Below are positions 5,601 to 56,600 of a stretch of 64,000 nucleotides of DNA, piece by piece. Every line of letters starts with the position of its first letter. Position 1 is the stretch's first letter. Both the position numbers and the translations under genes were made by a program. The notes beneath the pieces are model-generated. The model made no database searches and had not been told where the DNA came from. It was given only the letters and a program-made list of their open reading frames with translations. This stretch comes from Tubulanus polymorphus (Eukaryota > Animalia > Nemertea), in NCBI RefSeq assembly GCF_964204645.1, contig NC_134030.1, forward strand, positions 16,058,110-16,122,109, written 5' to 3'.

Positions 5601-8600
5601 AACAAAATTTAGTTTCCCGACTTCTGACACTGAACTAGTGCACCATCTTCATCTTAGTACAAATGGCACACTTGTACAGTCATATTGAGAGTATAATTTG
5701 AGTTGAGAAGTATGATTCTGAGAGATTTGAGTGAAAGAATGATGCAATTCGCCATGAAAATGATTAAGTTCAGTGCTTCATCTAGCATTAAACAAGAAAA
5801 TTAATTTTAGAAATTTATTTGACGCCTGCGAAAAAAATGTAGAATTTCTGGGCTAAGCTAATGTGGAATTGCAAATTTGAAATCGAAGTTTTAAGAAATT
5901 TGGGGAATGATGAGATTTGGCGATTGGGTAGATGATACAGGTCTTCGACTCTAGTAGTGGTTTAAATTTTTTTATTGAAAATTCTCAATAATTGATCGCG
6001 AACTTGCGACCGACTTCATTTACTTATGCCTCTAAGCTGGTCTGCAACTTCATTGCCTCCATGGATGAAGAAAGAGCTCTTCTAATGTCTGCTTAATCAT
6101 GACTTCGAGCATATCGTGTGGCCTAGCCAGCCGGCCCGGTCCCCGGGCCACGGGTTTGGCTGTCACTCGATATCCTAGAGTCTTGAGTCTGGGTGGGTTG
6201 AAGTAGACATTGTCATTTAAAATAACATGCTTATGTTGTTCTGTATGAATTACCCGTGTGTCATGTATGTTGTATTAATTTATTTTAAAATTTGTATTTA
6301 TTGAATTTGGGAATTTTATCCCAGAATTTCAATGTAATAAGGATCAATAAAGAATTGAATTGAATTGTCACCTAATACACATGCCATCAGAGGACACGGA
6401 GCCGTATATGACAGCTATGCTATTATAAATTGCTAATCTCACGAAACTTGCATACTCCTAATATCAAACATATTTTCTAAAACGTTTGAATATTGAAATT
6501 ATATGTTTACACATTTTCATATTGACCGCTTGTAGCCGCTGATGAAATTCACGCCGGCCCTACACACATCGTAGATAGCTTCGTCATTCCACCGGCATGC
6601 CCACGTCAGGGTCTGACTTTTATATCAGACTTCCGCATCGTGTATACATCCGCCATTTAACCGAATAATCCGATTATGATTGGCAGTAGTTTGGAAGTCA
6701 GCCAATTTCCTGGAAACTTTAACTAGGCCACGCGTCTGAGGCACATTTTCACACGATGCACACTGACTGCAGTACATTTAAATATAACCACTGATCACAT
6801 GAGCTACTATCGTTGATATCATACGAAATATTTTTTTTATAGCCGTCGCAGGATACTTACTAACATTCGATGCGAAGGCTTATTTTGAAAGCCCTGACTC
6901 ATTACTCGTGACTGACAAGGGCAGGAGGGCAGACCTACGGCAAGTGATGAGGGCATAAGGGCGGGCATGGGACACATCTGAAGGGCAAAAGGGCAGCTAT
7001 TTTAGGGGGCGGGGCGGACCGCCCCTCTATTTTTGGCTAGATGAAGCACTGAAGTTTTTCCATAAGTTATCAAATTTTTTTCAGTATTCACAGGTGAATA
7101 AAATTCAGTGACAATTTTTCTAAAACCCGAACGCCGTATTTTCACACGTAATTACGGAACAGTTATGGAAAAATCAACGTATCAATACGTATCAATATAT
7201 CGAACCAGCAAACCCAGCTATCAAACAAACTAACCAAATCCAGCATTTAGTCAATCCAAGTAGCCCTCCCCAACTACCACATAATGCAACTAGGCCAATC
7301 CAGTTACCATTTAACCTTAGTAGCGCTCCTCATGCTATATCCAGGTAACCTTACCTTCTTCAGTCATGTTTTTCTGACTATCGTCATCTTCATCATCATC
7401 ATCATCATCATCACCACCAGATGTCAACGGAATTGTGATTTGCCCCGATTCTAGCATCTCTTTCAATCTATCATTTTCTTCTTTTAACTCTCGGATTAAT
7501 TTCTCAGTTGGGTCTTCATTTACGACGGCTTTCGTTTTAATCTGTTTTGCACGATCAGCTGTTGGTAAACAATTTACTTCTAGAGACTGGTACTTATTTG
7601 AAGTTATTTTATCCAATAAAATAAAATTGAATTGGATTTGACAGAATATTGACAGATTTTTGGCAGAATATAATTTGATTGAATTTGCAATTTGAGCACA
7701 CGACTTATAAGCATTTCAAGGTCACCCATAGGATATGAAAATAAGCTATTTTCCTGATCCTTGCGCAATTCTCAAGGATGAATTTTTTGTAGTGCTGATA
7801 AGATTCTGCTGAATCAAAGAGCCCGGGAATGAAAACAGAGGCGTTTGACAAACGAGGAAACATTAGAATTAACAACATAGCTGCAAAGCAGCGATAACGG
7901 GTCTTCTACACAGCCTTGTTCGCGTCGAACACGAATGCATGTATGTTGACGCGGCTCCACCAGGCTATGAAAGTGAAGGGAATTTAGAATTCTGCTCAAC
8001 GGTCAACACGGTTTTATAAAATGAAGGTCTACAAACAGTCAATTGGGCTTACATGTAACCACCATGGATGATTGGACCAGATGGTTATTTGACTCTGGAA
8101 AATCGATTGTTAGGCCTTATTTAGTCTTTATGGATTTCGAAAAGCATTTGATAAGGTACATCAGCGATTACGAAACAAGCCTCTGGGAAATGGTATCAAT
8201 GATGGGTCACTGAAATGGCTCAGCAGTTTTATCCAATTGAAAACAGGGGGCCGAAATCAACAGAACTGTCTATTCTTGGAAATAAGTAGATCTAACTAGT
8301 GGAGTCACTCAAGTTAGTATCCTAAGTCGTCTTCTCTTCACAGTCCTGATAAATGATTTACAGAGTAATCCGAAATGTACAGGACCGAGTAAATTTCCAA
8401 AGCGACCTAAACAAGTTTATCCCACACATGGTCAGAGACATGGAAGCTAACCTTCAACCTAAAAAGGTACAATATGGATATTGGATACAGGGTCATATTA
8501 TACCTTTGTGTTCGAGAGAGAAGATTACTTTGATCGAATGAAGATTACTCATTACAACGAAAAGACTATTTAGTTCTACGTTCCACGAACATCATTTTCT

Positions 8601-11600
8601 TTGGAATGAAAAACTAATCGATTGTACAATATAATACTTGTTTGAACAAAAAACTTTATGTTCCGACAAGAAAATTTAGTTTGAATGAAAACAATTCTGT
8701 GCGATCGAACAATATACTTTTTGTTCATACGAAAAACTTTTTGTCCCCACAAAAAATTTGTCAGACAAAAAATTTGTTGGGAATATTGAGAAAACTATTT
8801 TGTTCGAGCGACTTTTTCAACCAAAGTTTTGTTCGATCGAAAAAAATATTTTTGGTTCGAACGAAAAGATGTATGTCCTAAAAAGAACATTTGTTTCGAA
8901 TAATAACAATTCTGTTCAATCAAATATTATATGCCTACTTTTTTATCGAGCAGAAAACCTTTTGTTCTGATATAAAAAATTTGTTCCAATAAAATGCTAT
9001 GTTGTTGTTCGAACGAAAAACTTTTTGTCCCAATATAAAAAATTGTTGAGTGAAAACAATTCGAATGAAAACAATTCTGTTCGATGGAACAACATCAACG
9101 ATGTTCGATCGAACAAAATCAATTTTGTCCACCGAAAAAAAAAAATTATCAATTCGAACGAAAAAGTTCTGGCACAAAAATTTATTCGAACAAAAAGATA
9201 TTCAAATGAAAAAGAGATCTTATCATCCGGGGCTTTGTAGTAAAGTCATCAGGAATCAATAAAATACAAGTTTCATTAATGCTGAAAACTTCAACTGAAA
9301 AAACTCTGGTTGATAAAGCTTGCTCAGACGAATGCTAACAGCTTTTCAAAAGAAATCTTCATTTTAGCCTATGTTGGCCTACGTACGCGGGTAGGCCTAG
9401 CATCCGGACAGAGGAGGCTTAGGCCTATAGCGCTTTAACCCTCCTAAACATCGTATTCCTACACCTTTATTTAATAGGGTTAGGTCTCATGGTGTATTAG
9501 ATTTGTAAAATCAATTTCATTTTCAGATGAAGATACATATCTTTCGTACTAAGTGTCTAAGCTGTCCTGATTTTCTATTGTAAATTTTGTTTGAAGTTCA
9601 ATCCATGTGTCCGTTGATGAACACAACAATTATATTGTGTTCGTTTGAAACAGTAAAGCACGTAGGCCCAAAGGTCGCGTAGGACCTCAATAAACACTTC
9701 AAGCGGCCTAGAATCGATCTTCTATCACCCGCGGTATTGGAAACACTGAATCCGAATATCAAGCGTGAGTTCAGCTTACGGACAAGAAAAGAATGTGTTA
9801 TATACAGATACTCTGTGGATTTGGTAAAATCGACAAATAGAATATTGATATATGGTTAAAGTCCGCGGCCGAATCACTGGTAGTAATAAATTCATTTATT
9901 TTGATACCTCGTCAACACTACAGCTTTTCTCCACTGCATCTGTTCGGCGTGTTTAGTTTAGGCCGACTGCTCACCGGTACTTAAATGATTCATCATAATA
10001 AATATCCGGCAAATTTGGTAAAAGGATATTAGATTGTTTGACTATCTGTATGAAGCCCACGGCCAGATCACTGGGAGTAATAAATTTATTCGTACTTGAT
10101 TTGATTCTCATGGCGAGGAAAACTCGCAGCGGATCAGTGGAATGACGAGGTAAAGACACACGTTGATTATCGATCTTTACAGCTCAATAGTGCTTATGAT
10201 ATTTATAATATTCAGAGTCGTAAATATCATGTGGATCAAGTATACTGATGAAGAAAATGGGTAATTTTTAAAATTACTGTCTGAAGACCGCGACTGAATG
10301 TGAAGGCTTGCGGCAATAAATTTGTTTATTTACACTTGAATTGATAATCGAAGTGAGGACCAGCCTGCAGATGATTTCGGGATGACGACTCTAAAAAACA
10401 TGTCGCCTCATTGATTGGGGCTCAATTTTCGATGTTTACGGCCTGACAGTACTTTTGTAACGTTGATTCATCAAAATTGCAGTATCTGTAGATCGAGGTG
10501 AGTTAAATGAAATAAAATGGATTCTATCGGAAACCGCGCTAAGGTAAGATAGCCTTTGCAGTTTTGACGTCAATTGTCGAAAAAAAATAATAAACACGCC
10601 AATATCAATAGGGTTTTCTGTGATGTAACAGAAAACCCTAATCATGCAAATATCAATAGGGTTTTCTGTGATGTAACAGAAAACCCTACTTATTAGGCTA
10701 ACTAGTGATGGCCGAACCAGCAGCAATAAGCACCGAAGATGCGAAGCCCCTAAGGGGGATATGGGGGATCTACCCCAAGAACATTTTGAAATTTTAAGGA
10801 GAATTTGGCGCATCTGTGGCCGATTTTCCAATGACAAAATAACACTGCTGCCACGCAGTTGGTCAATTGTTGTATTTGTCTTGAGTAAATGAAAAGGATG
10901 GCTCCGACAATATCCAAATCACTAGAACATGTTCATACTTAAATGCAATTGTCAATAAATAGTTGAGTCCCAAGAGGAGCCCCTATCTATAATCTTCTTA
11001 TCTACCACTCAATACAAGCACACTGTACCTGAATCAAAACAATGACTACTTTTATTGAGCACGTATGCTATGCTTTGTTGAATGAAATGAAGCGCACCAC
11101 TGCAGATTCTAAATATAGATTTCCCGCGCAGCGCTTTAACATGGTTATATATTATTGATCTGTAAAGTGGGTTTGAACAACAGCGATGTTTCGCAATGCT
11201 GTTGTAAAAAAAATTTCAGCGATCTAACTCTACTTTTCCCCAAGACCCTAACCCCTTCCCGCCATCATTTTCTCAACAGATCAACATCAATCTCAAGAAT
11301 GATAAAAATGGACCTCCAACTGCGGAAATCCGCGTTTCCACAAAAAAATTTTATCCCTGAGAACCTATCCAGGGCTGATCTAGAGGTTTGTTTCTGGGGG
11401 TCAGACCCCTGCATCCCTATAGTGGTTGCCCCTTCTGTATCGGCAGTGATCGTTTAAACCTGAATATTTTACAATTAGAAACAGACCCTCTAAGAAATTT
11501 CATCAATGAACAAAGGAACATCCACGGACATCATGCCAGAGGCGAATCCAGTTTACCATCCGTGCCTCCTGGGAGGTTACAAAATTTGCCCTTCAAAAAT

Positions 11601-26600: not shown

Positions 26601-29600
26601 TCGGTACCCTTTAATAGTCACCCCTTTAAACCCTTTCTGATTAGACAGAAAATGAAAAAATTCCACTAGATCTGCTACAGCGGGACGGAGAGGATCCACC
26701 TGTCTCCCAGAGCACCAATTGCGAAAATATTCCCACTTAGCATCATAGACTGTCCCTGTCGAGGGTCTCCTGGATGCCAGAATAAACGAGGCAGGCCTTT
26801 GCAAAAATCCCTGATCCGCGAGGGATTGCTGGACAGTGGCCAAGCGTGAAGATCCAAGAAACTCACGTTGGGGTGAGACTTGAACCGCCCCTGGGATAAT
26901 AGTCAGAAAAGTTTGGAGCCGACGCGGCTGATCGCACAGAAGATTCAGAAGTCTCGGCAACCAAGTCTGAGCTGTCCAGCCTCCACCCGCTCCAACACCC
27001 GATTTATCAGGGGAACAGGGGGATAAGCGTAGGCATGAACATTGTCCCACTCTAGGGAGAACGCATCCACGGCCCATGCCTGGTCGTCAAGGAATGGACA
27101 GATGAACACTGGGCACCTGGTGTTGAACCTGGTAGCAAACAGGTCTAGATTGGGCCAACCTACCAGTGACCTGACTCGATCCGCTACCGGCTGAGACAGT
27201 GTCCACTCAGTGGGAATCGGCTTGTCCCGACGCGACAACTGGTCAGCCAGCACATTCAATTTTCTGGCTAGATGGGATACCGAAAGCGGAATCCCCTGCG
27301 CCTGAACCCATAGAAGGATCTATGCGGGTAACCGCGTTAAAGTCCGAGACCTCGTTCCCCCCTGATTCAAGAGATAGGCTTTGACCGTCGAGTTGTCCGT
27401 GGCCAACCACACATGGCGCCCGGACAGTCTCCTGTGGAAGAACTGCAATGCTTTCTGCACTGCTAACAACACCAAATGGTTTATGTGCAAACCTCTCTCC
27501 CTCGACGTCCAGGCTCCCGACTTCCGAGAAGCCTCGAGATGGGCTCCGCATCCGTAAAAACTGGAGTCTGTGAAAAGATAAATTGGCGCCTTGAGTGGAG
27601 CTAGGGACGTGCCTTTCAGAAGGTTGAAAGTTAGAGTCCACCACATGATATCCGCCACCAGGGCTGCTGGAGGCACCGGGAGAAGACCGTCCTAGCATTG
27701 ATTTGAATTCGATCAAGAACTTTTCCAAAACTGCTGTAGTGGACAACTGAGACCAGTACCGCGCCGACCAGGGAATCCCCTGAGTCAGGCCGGATACCGC
27801 TTCTTTGAGTTTGTGTACCCTTGGTTCGGCTGGATAAACTAGACCGAGTTCAGGTCGAAGTACATCCCCAGATATACAAATCTCTGAGTGGGGACCAGAT
27901 ACGACTTCTCCAGATTCACCCTGAAACCCAACTGGTTTATTAAGGCCAAGGTTTTCTCCAACCCTTCCTGGCACTCCCTTGCCGAATCCGCCACCACCAA
28001 CCAGTCGTCCAGGTAAACGAATAGACGTACCCCTTGTGACTGAAGGTGACGCTGAACCGTTTTCACTAACTTTGTGAATAACCAGGGGGCGGCACTGAGC
28101 CCGAACGGAAGAGCGCGAAATTGGTAAGTTTTTCCTTGCCACTTCACCCTGAGGAATTTGCGGGACCTCGGGTGTACAGGGACCTGGAACTAAGCATCCT
28201 TTAAATCTATCGAGTTTTATCTTTCTTAAAGAATTATTTTGTAGTCAAATAAGACCAAAGATATACATTTGTTTGCGGTCCACGTCCAAAATTTTGTAGG
28301 GTACAGGTAGGCGCGGCAGGGAAACTATTTTATATTTTCAAAAAAATATGTTTAATATAATATGAAAAAATATTCAAATAAGGCCATCCCAAAATAATTG
28401 TCTGTTTGCCGCAACACCGACTGAACTTTTCAGGATGAGTCGGTAGGAAGGTAGAAATCTTTTTTTGCAAAATTTTTGGGCAAAAAAAAAAATTTTTCAC
28501 CTTTTTTACATGGAAACAATATCGCAAAAAATCATCTACGTTGCGCACAGGAAATTTGTCTAATAGCGTAGATTTCAAGAATTATTCTAAAATTATAACT
28601 TTGTCCAGAGCGTCATCTCTGTCTTAAAAATGAAACAGTACATTGAATATGTGCGCGCTTTTACGTTACCAGCTATTCCTATAGTCACTATTAGAATGAA
28701 TGGCAGCTTATTGGAACACTGCCAGTTTCCTGGAAACTTAAACTAGGCCACATGTCAAGGCATGTTTTCGCACGATGCACACTAGAATTCAAACATATGT
28801 TCCTCATAGTCGGTCGGCCATGATGTCACATATCAGAGGGTGGCTGAATATTGGGTATTGGAAACCTCTTCCAATGTTGGCCACGGACGCTAAAATACCG
28901 GTACAGAAGAAATCGGCTATTAGATCGTTTTAAGTCCTGGAATTTACCACTACAATATTCAGACCTCGACAGACCTTATAGTTTACTGCTTAGTAATTTC
29001 AGGTCACAAGAAATTACAATTTATTACACATTCTGAACAGAAAACACAGCGCTCATCTTCTGCTATGATTATTCAGCCTATTTTCATGCAGTGTTGCCAG
29101 CACCAAGCTTTGCTATATCCGGAAGTATTTATTGACATACACAAACTTGCGAGCGCCTAAGGCGCGAAGCAATTTCGGGGGGTTTGGGGGTCCCCCCCCA
29201 AAAAATTTCAGAAATTAGAAGCGTTTTCCGAGCACTTAGAGCGATCGTGAACCCATGAACAACTTATTATATTCTGGAAGGTAATGGCTATTTCCAATGT
29301 GGCACATCCTCATTCGTTGACGATCAGCATCTTCTCACGCATTACGGGTCGAGTCCTGAATTATTGCAGTTCAAATGCGCCGATGAACGCTCACAAATTC
29401 AAGATCGTAGCGCTTGAGCGCTTAGTTGGCAAGGAAATATTTAAAATTTCGTTAATAATCAATTTATCCGTGAATATCATGCAACTCATTTTCCGGGGAA
29501 CTATCGCATACGGGCCTATTGAAAATAAAAAAAATGGAACATTCAAAAAAGGACGGATCATAGATAGTTTAGGCCTAAGCCTATATAGATGATCATAGAT

Positions 29601-50600: not shown

Positions 50601-53600
50601 CGAGCGGGCACGGAAATAAAAAACTAGGGGTCCAGGGACACCATGGGAAGTGGTTTCACTTGGGAAGTGGTTTCAAATGCTCAACAATCAAACGATTTCA
50701 ATATTCAATGCCCCTTAGTGACCATATACAAAAACCAATGACCTTGAAACTCACCAAAATCTCAGAATATGTCAGCAGCTATGATTTTGTAATCGATTGT
50801 GATAACAACATATGCTTCGTTACCAATTCAATAAAGAAATACTAAGTTATTCTACTATTCAACGCCCCCTGGTGACCATATGCAAAACCCAATGACCTTG
50901 AAACTCACCACAATCATAGAACATGTCATGAACTACAACTTTCCAATTGATTGTAATAACAAAATATGCATAGGTACAAATATAATATAGAAATACTAAG
51001 TTATTGTATTATTCAACGCCCCCTGGTGACCATATGAAAACCCAATGACCTTGAAACTCAGCACAATCATAGAACATGTCATGAACTACAACTTTGCAAT
51101 GGATCATGGTAACAAAATAGCCCTACGTACCAATCTGATAAGGAAATACTATGTCATTCTACTATTCAACGCCCCCTGGTGACCATATAGAATATATTAT
51201 GTCCTTGAAACTCACCACAATCATTGACGATGTCATGAGCTACAACTTTGCAATTGATTAAGTAACAAAATATGTGTAGGTACAAATATAATATAGAAAT
51301 ACTAAGTCATTGTATTATTCAATGCCCCCTGGTGGCCATATACAAAAAGCAATGAGCTTGAAACTGACCAAAATCATAGAAAACGTTATGAGCTACAACT
51401 TTCCAATACATTGTGGTAACACAATATGCTTAGATATCAATATAATGTGGAAAAACTTTTTCCCACCTACGAATGAGCACTGATGACGCCAAGATGGCCA
51501 CCAATTGTGCCATAATTGGCTGATCAAAAATACATGTCTCAGGTATACAACATCCCTTTTCAAAAATACCCATCAAAAATTGCGATGAGAAATGGCAAAC
51601 CTGTAAGAAGCTACAGGACTCAGAATTTGGGCCAAAATTTAAATTTTTGGCCACTAAAAAGGTCATAGGACGGCCATCTTGAGTCCGACCGACCCAATTT
51701 TTCTTATGTTGCTGGGCCCTTGGGGGATTCAAATATATACAAACAATCAATGTAATTGATAAAAGCGTCTTCAAAATTTCCCTCGAAAGCTTCGAAAATG
51801 TGTAAAAAGTGCTGATTTTGGCGAACAACAATGGCTGCCAGTCGGCCATCTTGAATCTGACAGGGCCAGTTTTTGGCCTGAACATGTGTCTAGGGTAGAT
51901 ACAAACCAAATATCAAGACATTAACTTGAAGCGTCTTCAAAACTTCCTAAAATAACTGGATTCCTTCTACGGACGGACAGACGGACGGACGAACGGCGGA
52001 CGAAAAGTGAACGCAATAGCCCGCTGGGACTAAAGTCCCCAGTGGGCTAAAAATGTTTTTCATTTTATGATATCTTTTTGGTGATTGCCCACAGGAGGCG
52101 GGGAAAAAATTTTTCCCAATCGGCAATTGCGCCAAAACCACGGCGCACCATCCGTACTCCAACTAATTTAAAAAAAGGCCTAAGTTGAAATATTCAATTT
52201 AACAGAATTAAATTGAAAATAAGAAAAATTTGGTTTCGGGCAGAGGTGTTAACTAAATAGAGGTGTTCATTAAGGGAGGATTTACTGAACCCAGGTAGAG
52301 GCAGATTCAGATCTTCAGGTTAGACTGGAAGGATACTATGCACTCTAGGTGAAATGCTTGACAATCTGACAACTTCAAATCAACACCCCTAGGTGAAAAT
52401 AACCAGGAGCTAATGACCTCGAAACTTACCACAATCATAGAACATGACATAGCCTAGGAAAAACTTTCCAATTGACTGTGGTTATCAAATAGGCCTATGC
52501 ATAGCTACATAGAAATACCATGTTATTACACTATTCATTGGTGAATGCACAGGGCCTACAGAAACCAATGAAATTCACAATCATCAGAGAACAACATGGC
52601 TAAGTTTTGCCGGCGGTTACATGCGTTTAGAAAAGCTACCGATAAAGATGGTCATTTGGCCTTAGAGATAAGGGATTTCAGTTGTTTCTGTCAGAGCTGT
52701 CTAGAGGTTGATCAAATTAGGACTCAGTTTTAAGACTTATCATTGGTGGTTAGACGATGCAAAATAGGTTATGGTACTGGATGATGTTGCGTGGAAAACA
52801 TGCCTTATCTACCTGGATAATGTAGTGGTGTTTAGTCATGATTTACCAACCCATCTGATGCAGTAACAAGAGGTATTTTGTTGCTTTCAGAAAGCCGGTC
52901 TCAAGCTCAAACCGAGAAAATGCTCTCTTTTCCAACGGCACCTCAAGTTTATCCGTTTCCCCAGTGACATCAACTCCCCCTATGTATACTCGTCCACTAT
53001 AGAGTATTGGGAGGAAATGACTTTTCGCGGGCGAATGTACATGGAGGCAAGAAAGAAAGAGATAGGGAGGGAGGGAGCCAAAAAAGCGATCGTAAGTCAA
53101 CACCAGATGGGGAAAAGCGAGGGTCCATCCAGCCACAATACGGACTCATCATCCACCGGGTCTTCAGGCAAACTGTGTAGTGTCAGATTATTACACTGGT
53201 GTCGCTGATGTCACTGAGAAACTATCCGTTTCCCCAGTGACATCAACTCCCCCTATGTATACTCGTCCACTATAGAGTATTGGGAGAAAATGACTTTCGT
53301 ATTCCGATTGAATATGTGAGGACCCAGATGATCAGATCAGGCGACTATCTATCCTTTTCCCCCTTTCTCATGCCTCTCTCCTCCCAACACTCATCAACAA
53401 AAAAGAGAGAGGGATAGGAAGGCAGCTGCTTCTTGATGGTAGACTACCACAGTGCATGTTCAACCCGGGGCAAAAACCCACCCAAGAAAAAATTAGATAA
53501 GCAATAAAGATGAAAGCAGACAATTGCGTCAATTGATACAAAATATAACCAGGGGTGGGAAGCCTCAGGCCGAACTCGCGTGAACAAAGTTAACTAGGGT

Positions 53601-56600
53601 ATAAGTCACCCTGAGAACGAGGAGAAAATTCCCAAACGCCCGAGCCAAACAAGGTTTAAAGAACCGAGGTAAAGACCTGCAGAGATCTCTAAAGATCCAA
53701 GGGCAAGAAATTTGCCGGTTGACCAAATTGTGAGTTTGAGCAGCTGCTTCTTGATGGTAGGATTCCGCAGTGCAAGTTCAACCTGGGCGGCAAAAACCCA
53801 CCCAGGTAGCCAAGAAAAAATTAAATAAGCAATAAAGATGAAAGCAGACAATTGTGTCAATTAATACAAAATATAACCAGGGGTGGGAAGCCCAAGGCCG
53901 AACTCGCGTGAACGAAGTCCACTAGGGTATGAGTCACCCTGAGAACGACGAGGTAATTCCCAAACGCCCGAGCCAAACAAGGGTTAAAGAACCGAGGTAA
54001 AGACCTGCAGAGACCTCTAAAGATCCAAGGGCAAGAAATTTAGTGTATATCACATGCAGTGGATCAGATAACAATGATAAAAGCTTACTATAATACAAGT
54101 GTAGCAGCCTGAGATATCTCAATAATAACAATAATAAAATGTATGAATTTGTGAGCAGTATTCGCTGTTAATAAGAAGACATACTAAAACCAAACTACGT
54201 GTAACACATTCTAGCCAAAAATGTTACCGGCCTCGCTAGCCATATACTTAGCTAGCACAAGCCATTAACCCTTAAGCCATTGCTTGCCACAAAATTTTTT
54301 CTGTCCAACATCGCTTGTTGGCACAAATCTTTACTGCCCAACCTCACTAGTTGGTGCAAAATCTTAACTGCCCAACCTCACTAGTTGGCGCACAATCTTC
54401 ACTGCCCAACCTCACTTGTTGGCGCAAAATCTTCACTGCCCAACATCACTAGTTGGCGCAAAATCTTAACTGCCCAACCTCACAAAATCTAAATCATTAA
54501 ACTTCCAAATCCCAACCTCACTAGTTGGTAAAGAAATAAGACTGATAAACAGAATGCTCACCAGACAAAGGTCGATCGATCAGGCTGAAGACTTCAGGCA
54601 AACTGTGTAGGGTCAGATTATTACACTGGTGTCGCTGATGTCACTGAGAAACTTTGGGGCATGTATTAGGCCTAAGTTAGGCCGGTGTCGAAACCGACAG
54701 TGCCAAATGCGATAGAGTCAGAGATTGGCCGACCCCAACGTTAGTTGCCGAATGGCGTAGTTTCCTTGGTCTCTTGACATACCAATAGACATCAGCGTCT
54801 AGGCTTGCCCGAGGACCACCAACCAAGGACTAAGTACAGTATGGACCTCTCTGACCACCTCACTAAGTCACACAACATTGTTCGTAATCGACTCGTGTTG
54901 GCACAAAGGAGTCAGAAAATGGACTATGACCGTTTCGCAAAACACGGAGGTTACAAGGTCGGGGATCGCGTGTGGCTGATGAGCCACTTTTTGAAAAAGG
55001 ACCAGGCACCTAAGTTCCACTGGAAATGGAAAGGGCCTTGCATTGTGACCGAGAGACGATCAGAGGTGAATTACATGGTTGTCCTAGAACCAGGCACCGA
55101 TGAGAAATGGGCCGGTACCTTAAATCAAAGGGTTAAATCCTATATATAGATATACCCTTGTATAGGCCTATAACCGTGTATATATTTTCTTAGTTTTAGT
55201 AAACAGTATATTTTCATTTGTAACTGGTGGTGACTAGGATTTCAGACTCCGTTGCACCTCCTGATGGTATGCTTGGGACCACCCACCTTGCATGATTCGG
55301 GTGGTATCTGAATAAATAAAATCCCCCACCTTTAGTCTTGTCGTTGCAGCCAACTCATGTTTTGAACTATTTATCATTTCTAGTATGGACTGTATCCAGT
55401 TAGACCAGTTATCTAGCCTCCACGAAGAGACACAGACCCAGCAGGTCTCGAAGAAGTTTGTTCCACCCTTCATAGACAGGATGCGACCTTCAGCGAATTA
55501 AGAGCAAAGATGGGCAGACTTAATAAATCTGCCATAGAACAGTCGTTTGTGGAGGATCCTGGCCGCATAGTTACCGGTGCGGTAGTAACCGGCCTCAAGA
55601 CAACCATGACCAGGCGTTTCCGGCTGAAGATGAGTACAGCAGCATTTGAGTGCATCAGCCAGGCACTAGTGGACACTCTGACCGGATGTGGTGGCGACTC
55701 GTCACACCTCTAGCTGAAATTTCGAGACTCGAAGCAGAGGGCAGTCGAGGACCTACTAATCGTGTTGCTGGGAGATTCAATGTTTACGAGGCTGAAGGCC
55801 AGCAGCAGTCTGATTCCCATTTGTCACCCTGGAAAACGACTCAGTGATTTGAGGGAGTACCTCCCGCATGTATACTTTAGGGCAAGAGGGATTGTTGTCG
55901 CGCATGGAATGAACCATGTCAGTGACTATGGCAGGACAGGGGAGGAGTTTGTGGATGTTGTAGCGCTTCTCAAGAGCAAGCACCCTTCTGTCCCCCTTTT
56001 CCACCTACAGACCCCTGTCCCTCACTGCTGGCGTGGTGAACACAATCGCGTAAATCAATATCAACCGGGTTAACATCTTCGCCCTCCATGCAAGGTTCCA
56101 ACAGGCCGACCATCCGGATATTTCGGATTCTGATTTTGTGGGGAACCACTACAAAAAGTCAGCCATGCACTATGTCTGTCGGGAAATAATCCTTGTGCTA
56201 GATCGCGTCTGAATGTGTTTTTTAACGAATAGGACTATTCTGTACGAATCGGTACATAGGACATATTCCATCACACCACCCCCCTTTCAACTTGTTCAAA
56301 CTCCTATTTGAACAGGAATGTATAGTCAACATATTTACACAAATTCAAACAATAATATAGGCCTAGTCCTCATTGTACAATATTTAAGCTCCAAACTTCT
56401 CGGCTCTGGATAGAGTAGACATCTAACACGACTTCTAACACTAGTCGTTATATTTCGCATTGGGGTTGCATCTCAGTGATTAGGATATAATATGCAGCTG
56501 TCGATCTCCACTGGTTTGTGGTTCGTTTTCAGGATGCACCTTTTGGTAGATACATGTGTAACCCAAATATCAAGACATTAGATTGAAGCGTCTTCAAAAC

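Follow-up and report, generated by a model that had tools for sequence, protein, structure and literature searches.

What kind of element interrupts the reverse transcriptase (RT) gene of a decayed retrotransposon in the nemertean Tubulanus polymorphus, and by which route could it have entered? This question is raised by a window of 64,000 nucleotides from contig NC_134030.1 (assembly GCF_964204645.1, positions 16,058,110 to 16,122,109 of the forward strand), the window being the whole stretch of DNA that was analysed. An initial annotation had described a segment within it (52951-54653) as a miniature, non-autonomous tyrosine-recombinase (YR) retroelement that lacks open reading frames (ORFs) and is seamlessly integrated into a Gypsy RT gene. 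We find that the segment, 1.7 kb long, represents a copy of a Ngaro-type tyrosine-recombinase retrotransposon that has no genes and lies inside the RT gene of another retrotransposon.

Along the plus strand the element consists of B2, a spacer, A2, B1, a 1.3-kb non-coding body and A1, all of which are assigned to the minus strand. B2, the 3′ terminal repeat in element sense (52950-53024; 75 nt), starts at the flank with (T)ATCCGTTTCC and is followed by the spacer of 137 bp (53025-53161). Next come the internal copies of the two terminal repeats, A2 for the 5′ repeat (53162-53223; 62 nt) and B1 for the 3′ repeat (53223-53297; 75 nt, 99% identical to B2), which abut and have one T in common. The body (53298-54591; 1294 bp) then leads to the 5′ terminal repeat A1 (54592-54653), a direct repeat of 62 nt that is 98% identical to A2 and ends the element with the letters ...GAGAAAC(T). 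With one mismatch between the two B repeats and one between the two A repeats, the duplicates differ at 2 of 137 positions overall. Read in element sense, the order is A1-body-B1A2-spacer-B2, which is the split-direct-repeat layout of Ngaro elements and is also kept in other copies. The repeats were thus found where the initial annotation had placed them; its length for A (62 bp) was correct, whereas B measured 75 instead of 77 bp. Likewise, repeat analysis and folding confirmed the A2/B1 joint (53206-53245), in which inverted arms of 17 and 18 nt surround the bases TATCC. Within the element, this joint reproduces the junction of the circle, and it is presumably where the recombinase acts.

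The body of the window copy contains an internal duplication of ∼320 bp (53422-53713 and 53740-54041) and a tandem array of 5.7 units of 34 bp (54290-54483) that adjoins A1. The four longest ORFs of the element (63-97 aa) had no Pfam match, no coding frame was conserved among the copies of the family, and an Rfam search at a permissive threshold returned only sub-threshold chance matches for the window element, in line with its description as ORF-less. A coding Ngaro would specify gag, RT/RNase H and a tyrosine recombinase, and no methyltransferase. Since no ORF of the window element matches Pfam and this coding set is absent, the element can only be a non-autonomous Ngaro member. As a side observation, the 34-bp unit holds a small palindrome of its own, CCAAC...GTTGG, and the size of the array varies widely, from 5.7 units in the window to ∼770 bp at locus L003 (L003:2343-3108). 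Coding Ngaros of the same genome also carry tandem repeats just inside A1 (L036 9476-9729, L054 1077-1381).

The insertion could be resolved to the base. Four uninterrupted paralogues of the host (L048, L049, L050, L052) carry the empty site ctcaagttt/ttggggcat, where the slash marks the insertion point, and deletion of 52951-54653 therefore gives back the host exactly. There was neither a target-site duplication (TSD) nor a deletion, and a single T is ambiguous between host and element, which corroborates the seamless insertion initially claimed. The left part of the host (52342-52949, plus strand) encodes RT (...YLDN...), as judged from its translation, its paralogues and an RVT_1 match in a paralogue, and RT continues in the right part (54654-54800, plus strand; LGHVLG...WPTPT...FLGL), as judged from translation and the empty-site paralogues. 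For the left flank, more than 25 paralogues were found that are 91-93% identical to it; a paralogous fragment spanning the insertion site matched RVT_1 at E 4e-20, and the insertion point coincides with the end of the RVT_1 match in the host paralogue. Since the RT flank of the host carries stop codons, its class was read from a long intact ORF of a paralogue, which encodes an aspartic protease, RVT_1 and RT_RNaseH in that order. By these sequence criteria the host fits a decayed, Ty3/Gypsy-like protease-RT-RNase H pol region.

With the window element as query, 73 matches were obtained in the 268-Mb genome, the copy counts from such genome searches being lower bounds. Probes for the termini located 23 B sites and 18 A sites genome-wide, whereas reversed-pattern controls located none. 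The B2-spacer-A2-B1 module recurs in L003, L005/L007, L008 and L013/L016, and L014 and L023 carry a diverged version of it; the 40-nt A2/B1 joint is kept at six loci with at most two mismatches. Ten copies share the same sharp left end, where the flank gives way to TATCCGTTTCC, and nine share the same sharp right end, GAGAAAC(T) followed by the flank, in both cases identical to the base. The 300-bp flanks of the copies showed no mutual similarity, none of the five two-ended copies in which a TSD was sought had one, and the first base of the right flank was a T in seven of nine copies. These results agree with the expectations of the initial annotation, namely that A and B would recur elsewhere in the genome, where they indeed travel together as a composite, and that a compilation of junctions would reveal insertion without TSDs and with a shared T.

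The bodies of L002-L005 run colinear with that of the window copy (88-92% identity), and the internal duplication and the 34-bp array are both shared; L003 extends to 2.3 kb, its array being much longer. In addition, there are several subfamilies at 68-79% identity that are equally small (1.4-1.6 kb). Colinear non-coding bodies, unrelated flanks and diverged small subfamilies together indicate that the gene-less form itself was amplified and diversified. Judged from sequence comparison, the family thus amplified after its coding capacity was lost, as is characteristic of terminal-repeat retrotransposons in miniature (TRIMs). Two copies on C9 (C9:9597554-9616023 and C9:6801856-6822339) are split by 16-18 kb and were taken to be nested insertions.

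Conservation within the family is concentrated at the termini. Between the window copy and L005, A2, B1 and B2 are identical at 212 of 212 positions, while identity falls to 89% for the spacer and 92% for the body. Termini that are more conserved than the interior are the pattern expected if A and B are cis-acting parts. The spacer is present in every composite and every solo copy, but its identity is 87-90% as compared to 95-100% for A and B. Three solo B-spacer-A units of 274 bp (L015, L018, L020) have the same exact ends. In the flanks, the independent insertions L005 and L008 have the same eight bases, AATGAATG, directly before the element, and GAA or GAT occurs in several further left flanks, 3-7 bases ahead of the element end. 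The weak resemblance of these GAA and GAT motifs to GAGAAAC, the end of the A arm, suggests that insertion may prefer pseudo-sites.

Could proteins for such an element be supplied from within the same genome? At least 33 Phage_integrase matches were found. The L036 family (L036, L037, L041, L042, L046), with a length of ∼7.15 kb, encodes a zf-CCHC gag, RVT_1 and an ALOG+Phage_integrase protein and has no methyltransferase match. On the strand opposite to its genes the order is B(72)-spacer(127)-A(55)B-body-A, which is the layout of the window element at nearly equal dimensions. At the A/B joint of this family, six bases are enclosed by perfect inverted arms of 15 nt each, and the A+B joint of the window family aligns colinearly with it (z = 6.3; exceeded by none of 2000 shuffles). 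Blastn and blastn-short searches with the element and its A and B parts gave no match in the first 16 recombinase loci. As to other properties of the L036 family, it is young, with recombinase ORFs that are 97-100% identical between copies (e.g. C6:12368097-12375247), and its recombinase combines an N-terminal zinc ribbon with an ALOG domain (Pfam E 2.6e-19). Two of its copies lie 9 kb apart on C6 in opposite orientation, and its target sites resemble the element's own joint (GATAGTATA).

A closer relationship was found in a sister family on C5 and C10, which was reached through a 3-mismatch match of the A probe on C5 at 0.6 kb from a recombinase match. Its A2/B1 region is 79% identical to the window element over 85 bp and is located 0.5-0.6 kb from a YR ORF. 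In the C5 copy (L053), B2, spacer, A2 and B1 are followed by the recombinase ORF, which is encoded on the opposite strand. The C10 copy (C10:9179240-9188152; 8.9 kb) comprises B2-spacer-A2/B1 (L057), recombinase, RT and A1 (L054) in the expected order and on the expected strand, and its RT is a 589-aa open frame with 48% identity to the L036 RT. At a further locus of 6.5 kb (C6:7846911-7853378), the B probe and the A probe each match with a single mismatch, and a Ngaro RT fragment lies on the expected strand. By sequence similarity, the termini of the window element are thus homologous to those of coding Ngaro elements. Since A and B are multi-copy and free of TSDs, and since elements with RT and YR genes have homologous termini, the identification of a miniature non-autonomous YR retroelement in the initial annotation is supported and not refuted. 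In the joint of the C10 copy (L057:1745-1790; C10:9179485-9179530) the stretch between the outer arms is inverted relative to the C5 copy and is followed by a short deletion. The sequence of the inverted stretch, TGTCACTGGGACAACGGGCAGTTTCTC, equals the C5 joint in reverse complement except for one base. A recombination event or a template switch at the palindrome itself would be compatible with this.

The three families allowed us to read their junction sites side by side. In the window family the left and right arms are TGATGTCACTG and CAGTGACATCA, in the sister family (C5/C10) TAGTGTCACTG and CAGTGACACTA, and in the L036 family TGATCAGTGTGGATA and TATCCACACTGATCA. The outer arms are exactly self-complementary within each of the three families and differ between families; between the window family and the sister family, two arm positions were changed on both sides. 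Symmetry that is kept via paired changes indicates that the arms either are bound together as a symmetric unit or have to base-pair. In the window copy the arms of the A2/B1 joint can be traced up to 30 nt with 73% complementarity and, as single-stranded DNA, the joint is predicted to fold into a hairpin (z = -5.75) that none of 200 shuffles matched. The idea that this hairpin serves as an integron attC-like site in single-stranded cDNA was set aside, as pairing of the arms yields one duplex half-site and not a two-arm site.

The central bases are TATCC in the window family, TGTCC in the sister family and GTATAA in the L036 family. In all three, these bases always remain on the B end and the A end terminates with the arm, while the host base after the A arm equals the first central base in seven of nine window-family copies (T) and in all five copies of the L036 family (G). 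With the central bases always on the B side, the crossover is placed where the A arm meets the centre, with an identity of 1-2 nt. The initial annotation had called the palindrome att/lox-like; the junctions do not show TATCC to be an overlap cut on both sides, as it remains on the B side in every copy. A lox/att exchange over a mismatched overlap should leave central bases on either end, and the fixed polarity would instead fit a single exchange. Conceivably, though we regard this as rather unlikely, the recombinase would complete just a single pair of strand exchanges, on the side of the A arm, after which replication or host repair would finish the joint. In some bacterial single-exchange systems the joint is indeed finished by replication or host repair. 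If this were true here, the 274-bp unit and the 1.7-kb element would be natural minimal substrates for studying the integration of YR retroelements. The 1-2 nt that are identical at the crossover are reminiscent of DIRS1-like elements, whose junction identity is likewise short and which also lack TSDs (PMC3266345).

We directly observed the architecture of the element, its copy number, its sharp ends, its exact TSD-free insertion, the homology of its termini to termini beside RT and YR genes, and the arm symmetry maintained by paired changes. The best explanation for the element is very probably that it is a non-autonomous member of a Ngaro-type lineage of tyrosine-recombinase retrotransposons, of the DIRS order. 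A cycle modelled on the published DIRS/Ngaro scheme can be proposed for it, in which the transcript would begin within A1 and stop within B2, and would be copied by an RT that a related coding Ngaro provides in trans. With the internal B1-A2 joint as template, the missing ends would then be restored and B2 linked to A1, by which the inverted-arm site would be remade. Finally, the recombinase would bind both arms, and crossover with the chromosome would take place where the A arm adjoins TATCC, for which about one shared base (T) would be needed. The RNA step, the mobilisation in trans, the binding by the recombinase and the positions of cleavage are all suggested by the architecture. The solo A-spacer-B units would then arise when the duplicated repeats recombine. 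Only for DIRS-1 is there experimental support that an internal copy of the joined ends is required for retrotransposition (PMC7192593).

Several findings weigh against this explanation. The family is small, its copies differ by 6-13%, and it may have ceased activity. The C5 copy of the sister family is decayed, with stops in its RT, and the C10 copy looks damaged, with a TAG in the YR gene and a rearranged joint. A small family, the divergence of its copies and the damage to those of its sister family together make current activity doubtful. An nhmmer profile of the termini found nothing significant in the first 16 YR loci. The 6.5-kb locus on C6 has only one B and one A probe match, its RT fragment contains a stop, and no recombinase match was found within it. 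As to the RT- and YR-coding partner foreseen initially, relatives with the same layout and homologous termini are present, whereas no intact autonomous element with near-identical A and B repeats was found in the genome. Lastly, reverse transcription of the family is deduced only from its architecture.

The last point leaves some room for mobility at the DNA level, where a recombinase would excise and reinsert circles via the inverted-arm site, as Cryptons do, and the split repeats would be a relic of a retroelement. TSD-free insertion with ∼1 nt of microhomology is compatible with any YR-mediated integration, and the solo 274-bp units, in which both arms are present, might be mobile as minimal DNA substrates. 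Such a route, however, needs no internal full site in direct orientation with the ends, a site that would be prone to self-deletion, and yet the full B2-spacer-A2-B1 module survives in subfamilies that have diverged by 20-30%. Moreover, A and B are conserved across their full 62-75 nt, far beyond the arms of 17-18 nt, and all coding relatives carry an RT. We therefore consider movement as DNA only improbable. The low copy number and the failure to find an active partner would also suit a dead, internally deleted coding Ngaro that never amplified by itself, with the other copies representing independent deletions or segmental duplicates. At least four copies, however, have the same colinear body with the 320-bp duplication and the 34-bp array in unrelated flanks; independent deletions should not yield the same breakpoints, and the several diverged subfamilies are equally small. 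A dead copy is likewise an improbable explanation.

Each B...A unit, furthermore, is bounded by imperfect terminal inverted repeats (TIRs) of 17-18 bp, and the 274-bp unit also stands alone in L015, L018 and L020, as if two unrelated same-ended MITEs (miniature transposable elements with inverted repeats), of 274 bp and 1431 bp, had come to lie side by side by chance. Against this, the tandem composite recurs at no fewer than six independent loci, no copy has the fixed-length TSD of MITEs and other TIR elements, and the same composite layout is present beside a recombinase gene in two coding Ngaro families. A chance tandem is hence highly improbable and already contradicted by the data. A Helitron, which would have 5′ TC and 3′ CTRR ends together with a subterminal hairpin and would insert between A and T, was rejected as well: the ends are (T)ATCC... 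and ...GAAAC(T), and the base before the left end varies.

How does the proposed non-autonomous Ngaro relate to known systems? In Cafeteria burkhardae, Ngaro elements have split direct repeats in the order A1-ORFs-B1A2B2 as well as solo AB repeats (PMC8547959). With Ngaros of this kind and of the zebrafish Ngaro1 type, the window element shares the arrangement A1-[internal]-B1A2B2, the absence of a TSD and scattered solo AB repeats. It differs from them in being gene-less, in its size (1.7 kb versus 5-9 kb) and in an interior that consists of a duplicated non-coding unit and the 34-bp array. TOC1 of Chlamydomonas reinhardtii, an element of ∼5.7 kb, belongs to the PAT/TOC group. It has been called a non-autonomous DIRS retrotransposon (PMC9940879). 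Like TOC1, the window element is a non-coding retroelement of the YR order that would rely on coding relatives; unlike TOC1, it is of the Ngaro type, much shorter and located in an animal genome, a distinction that is drawn from the description of TOC1.

The solo units have a counterpart in SIRE of Trypanosoma cruzi, which corresponds to the A2-to-B2 region of the split direct repeats of VIPER and is very abundant, and which may be mobile or a remnant (PMC6681497). The 274-bp units L015, L018 and L020 represent the same region, but such units are few here and exist alongside a full non-coding A1...B1A2B2 element. Similar to TRIMs and large retrotransposon derivatives (LARDs), the window element is short and gene-less, retains solely terminal, cis-acting repeats and would be amplified by the proteins of a partner. 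TRIMs have true long terminal repeats, use a DDE integrase and generate 5-bp TSDs. In the window element, by contrast, the repeats are split, the junction site is palindromic and a TSD is absent. With Cryptons it shares a recombinase-type integration at short microhomology and the lack of a real TSD (PMC3212892). Cryptons, however, are YR DNA transposons that encode the recombinase and have neither an RT nor long split direct repeats (PMC3212892). As non-autonomous YR retroelements (TOC1, SIRE/VIPER) were already known, and solo AB repeats too, the window element is not a new kind, although it is a well-supported natural case of a type of element that has received little study. No named non-autonomous Ngaro was found in the open-access literature, Repbase being outside this search. 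What the annotation adds is the side-by-side reading of three junction sites.

To our knowledge, integration of DIRS and Ngaro elements is the least understood integration route of retrotransposons, and we know of no DIRS or Ngaro recombinase site that has been defined biochemically. The three related families in this one genome allow their junction sites to be compared, while the gene-less 1.7-kb family and the 274-bp solo units hold little besides cis signals. The paired changes in the arms and the fixed crossover point lead to testable predictions for binding and cleavage by the recombinase. For genome annotation, it follows that short 'TIR-like' repeats without TSDs in animal genomes may be derivatives of YR retroelements rather than MITEs.

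Some further observations concern other repeats. The recombinase loci L031, L032, L033, L035 and L043-L045 have inverted repeats and an internal complementary stretch, as exemplified by L031 (7259-7342 versus 7465-7548; 2904-2954 versus 7217-7267), a layout that is DIRS1-like and not Ngaro-like. Both types of YR retroelement therefore coexist in this genome. Tandem arrays lie beside a YR retroelement in L035 (L035:6765-8795; period ∼290 bp, 95-99% identity) and beside a Ngaro copy in L046 (L046:1197-2759; period ∼118 bp, 88-94% identity), and the right flank of the latter copy (9886-9991) consists of the same 118-bp satellite. Elsewhere in the window, a weak RT-like match on the minus strand (27821-28216), with 29% identity to the L036 RT and two TAG stops, is probably another decayed retroelement.

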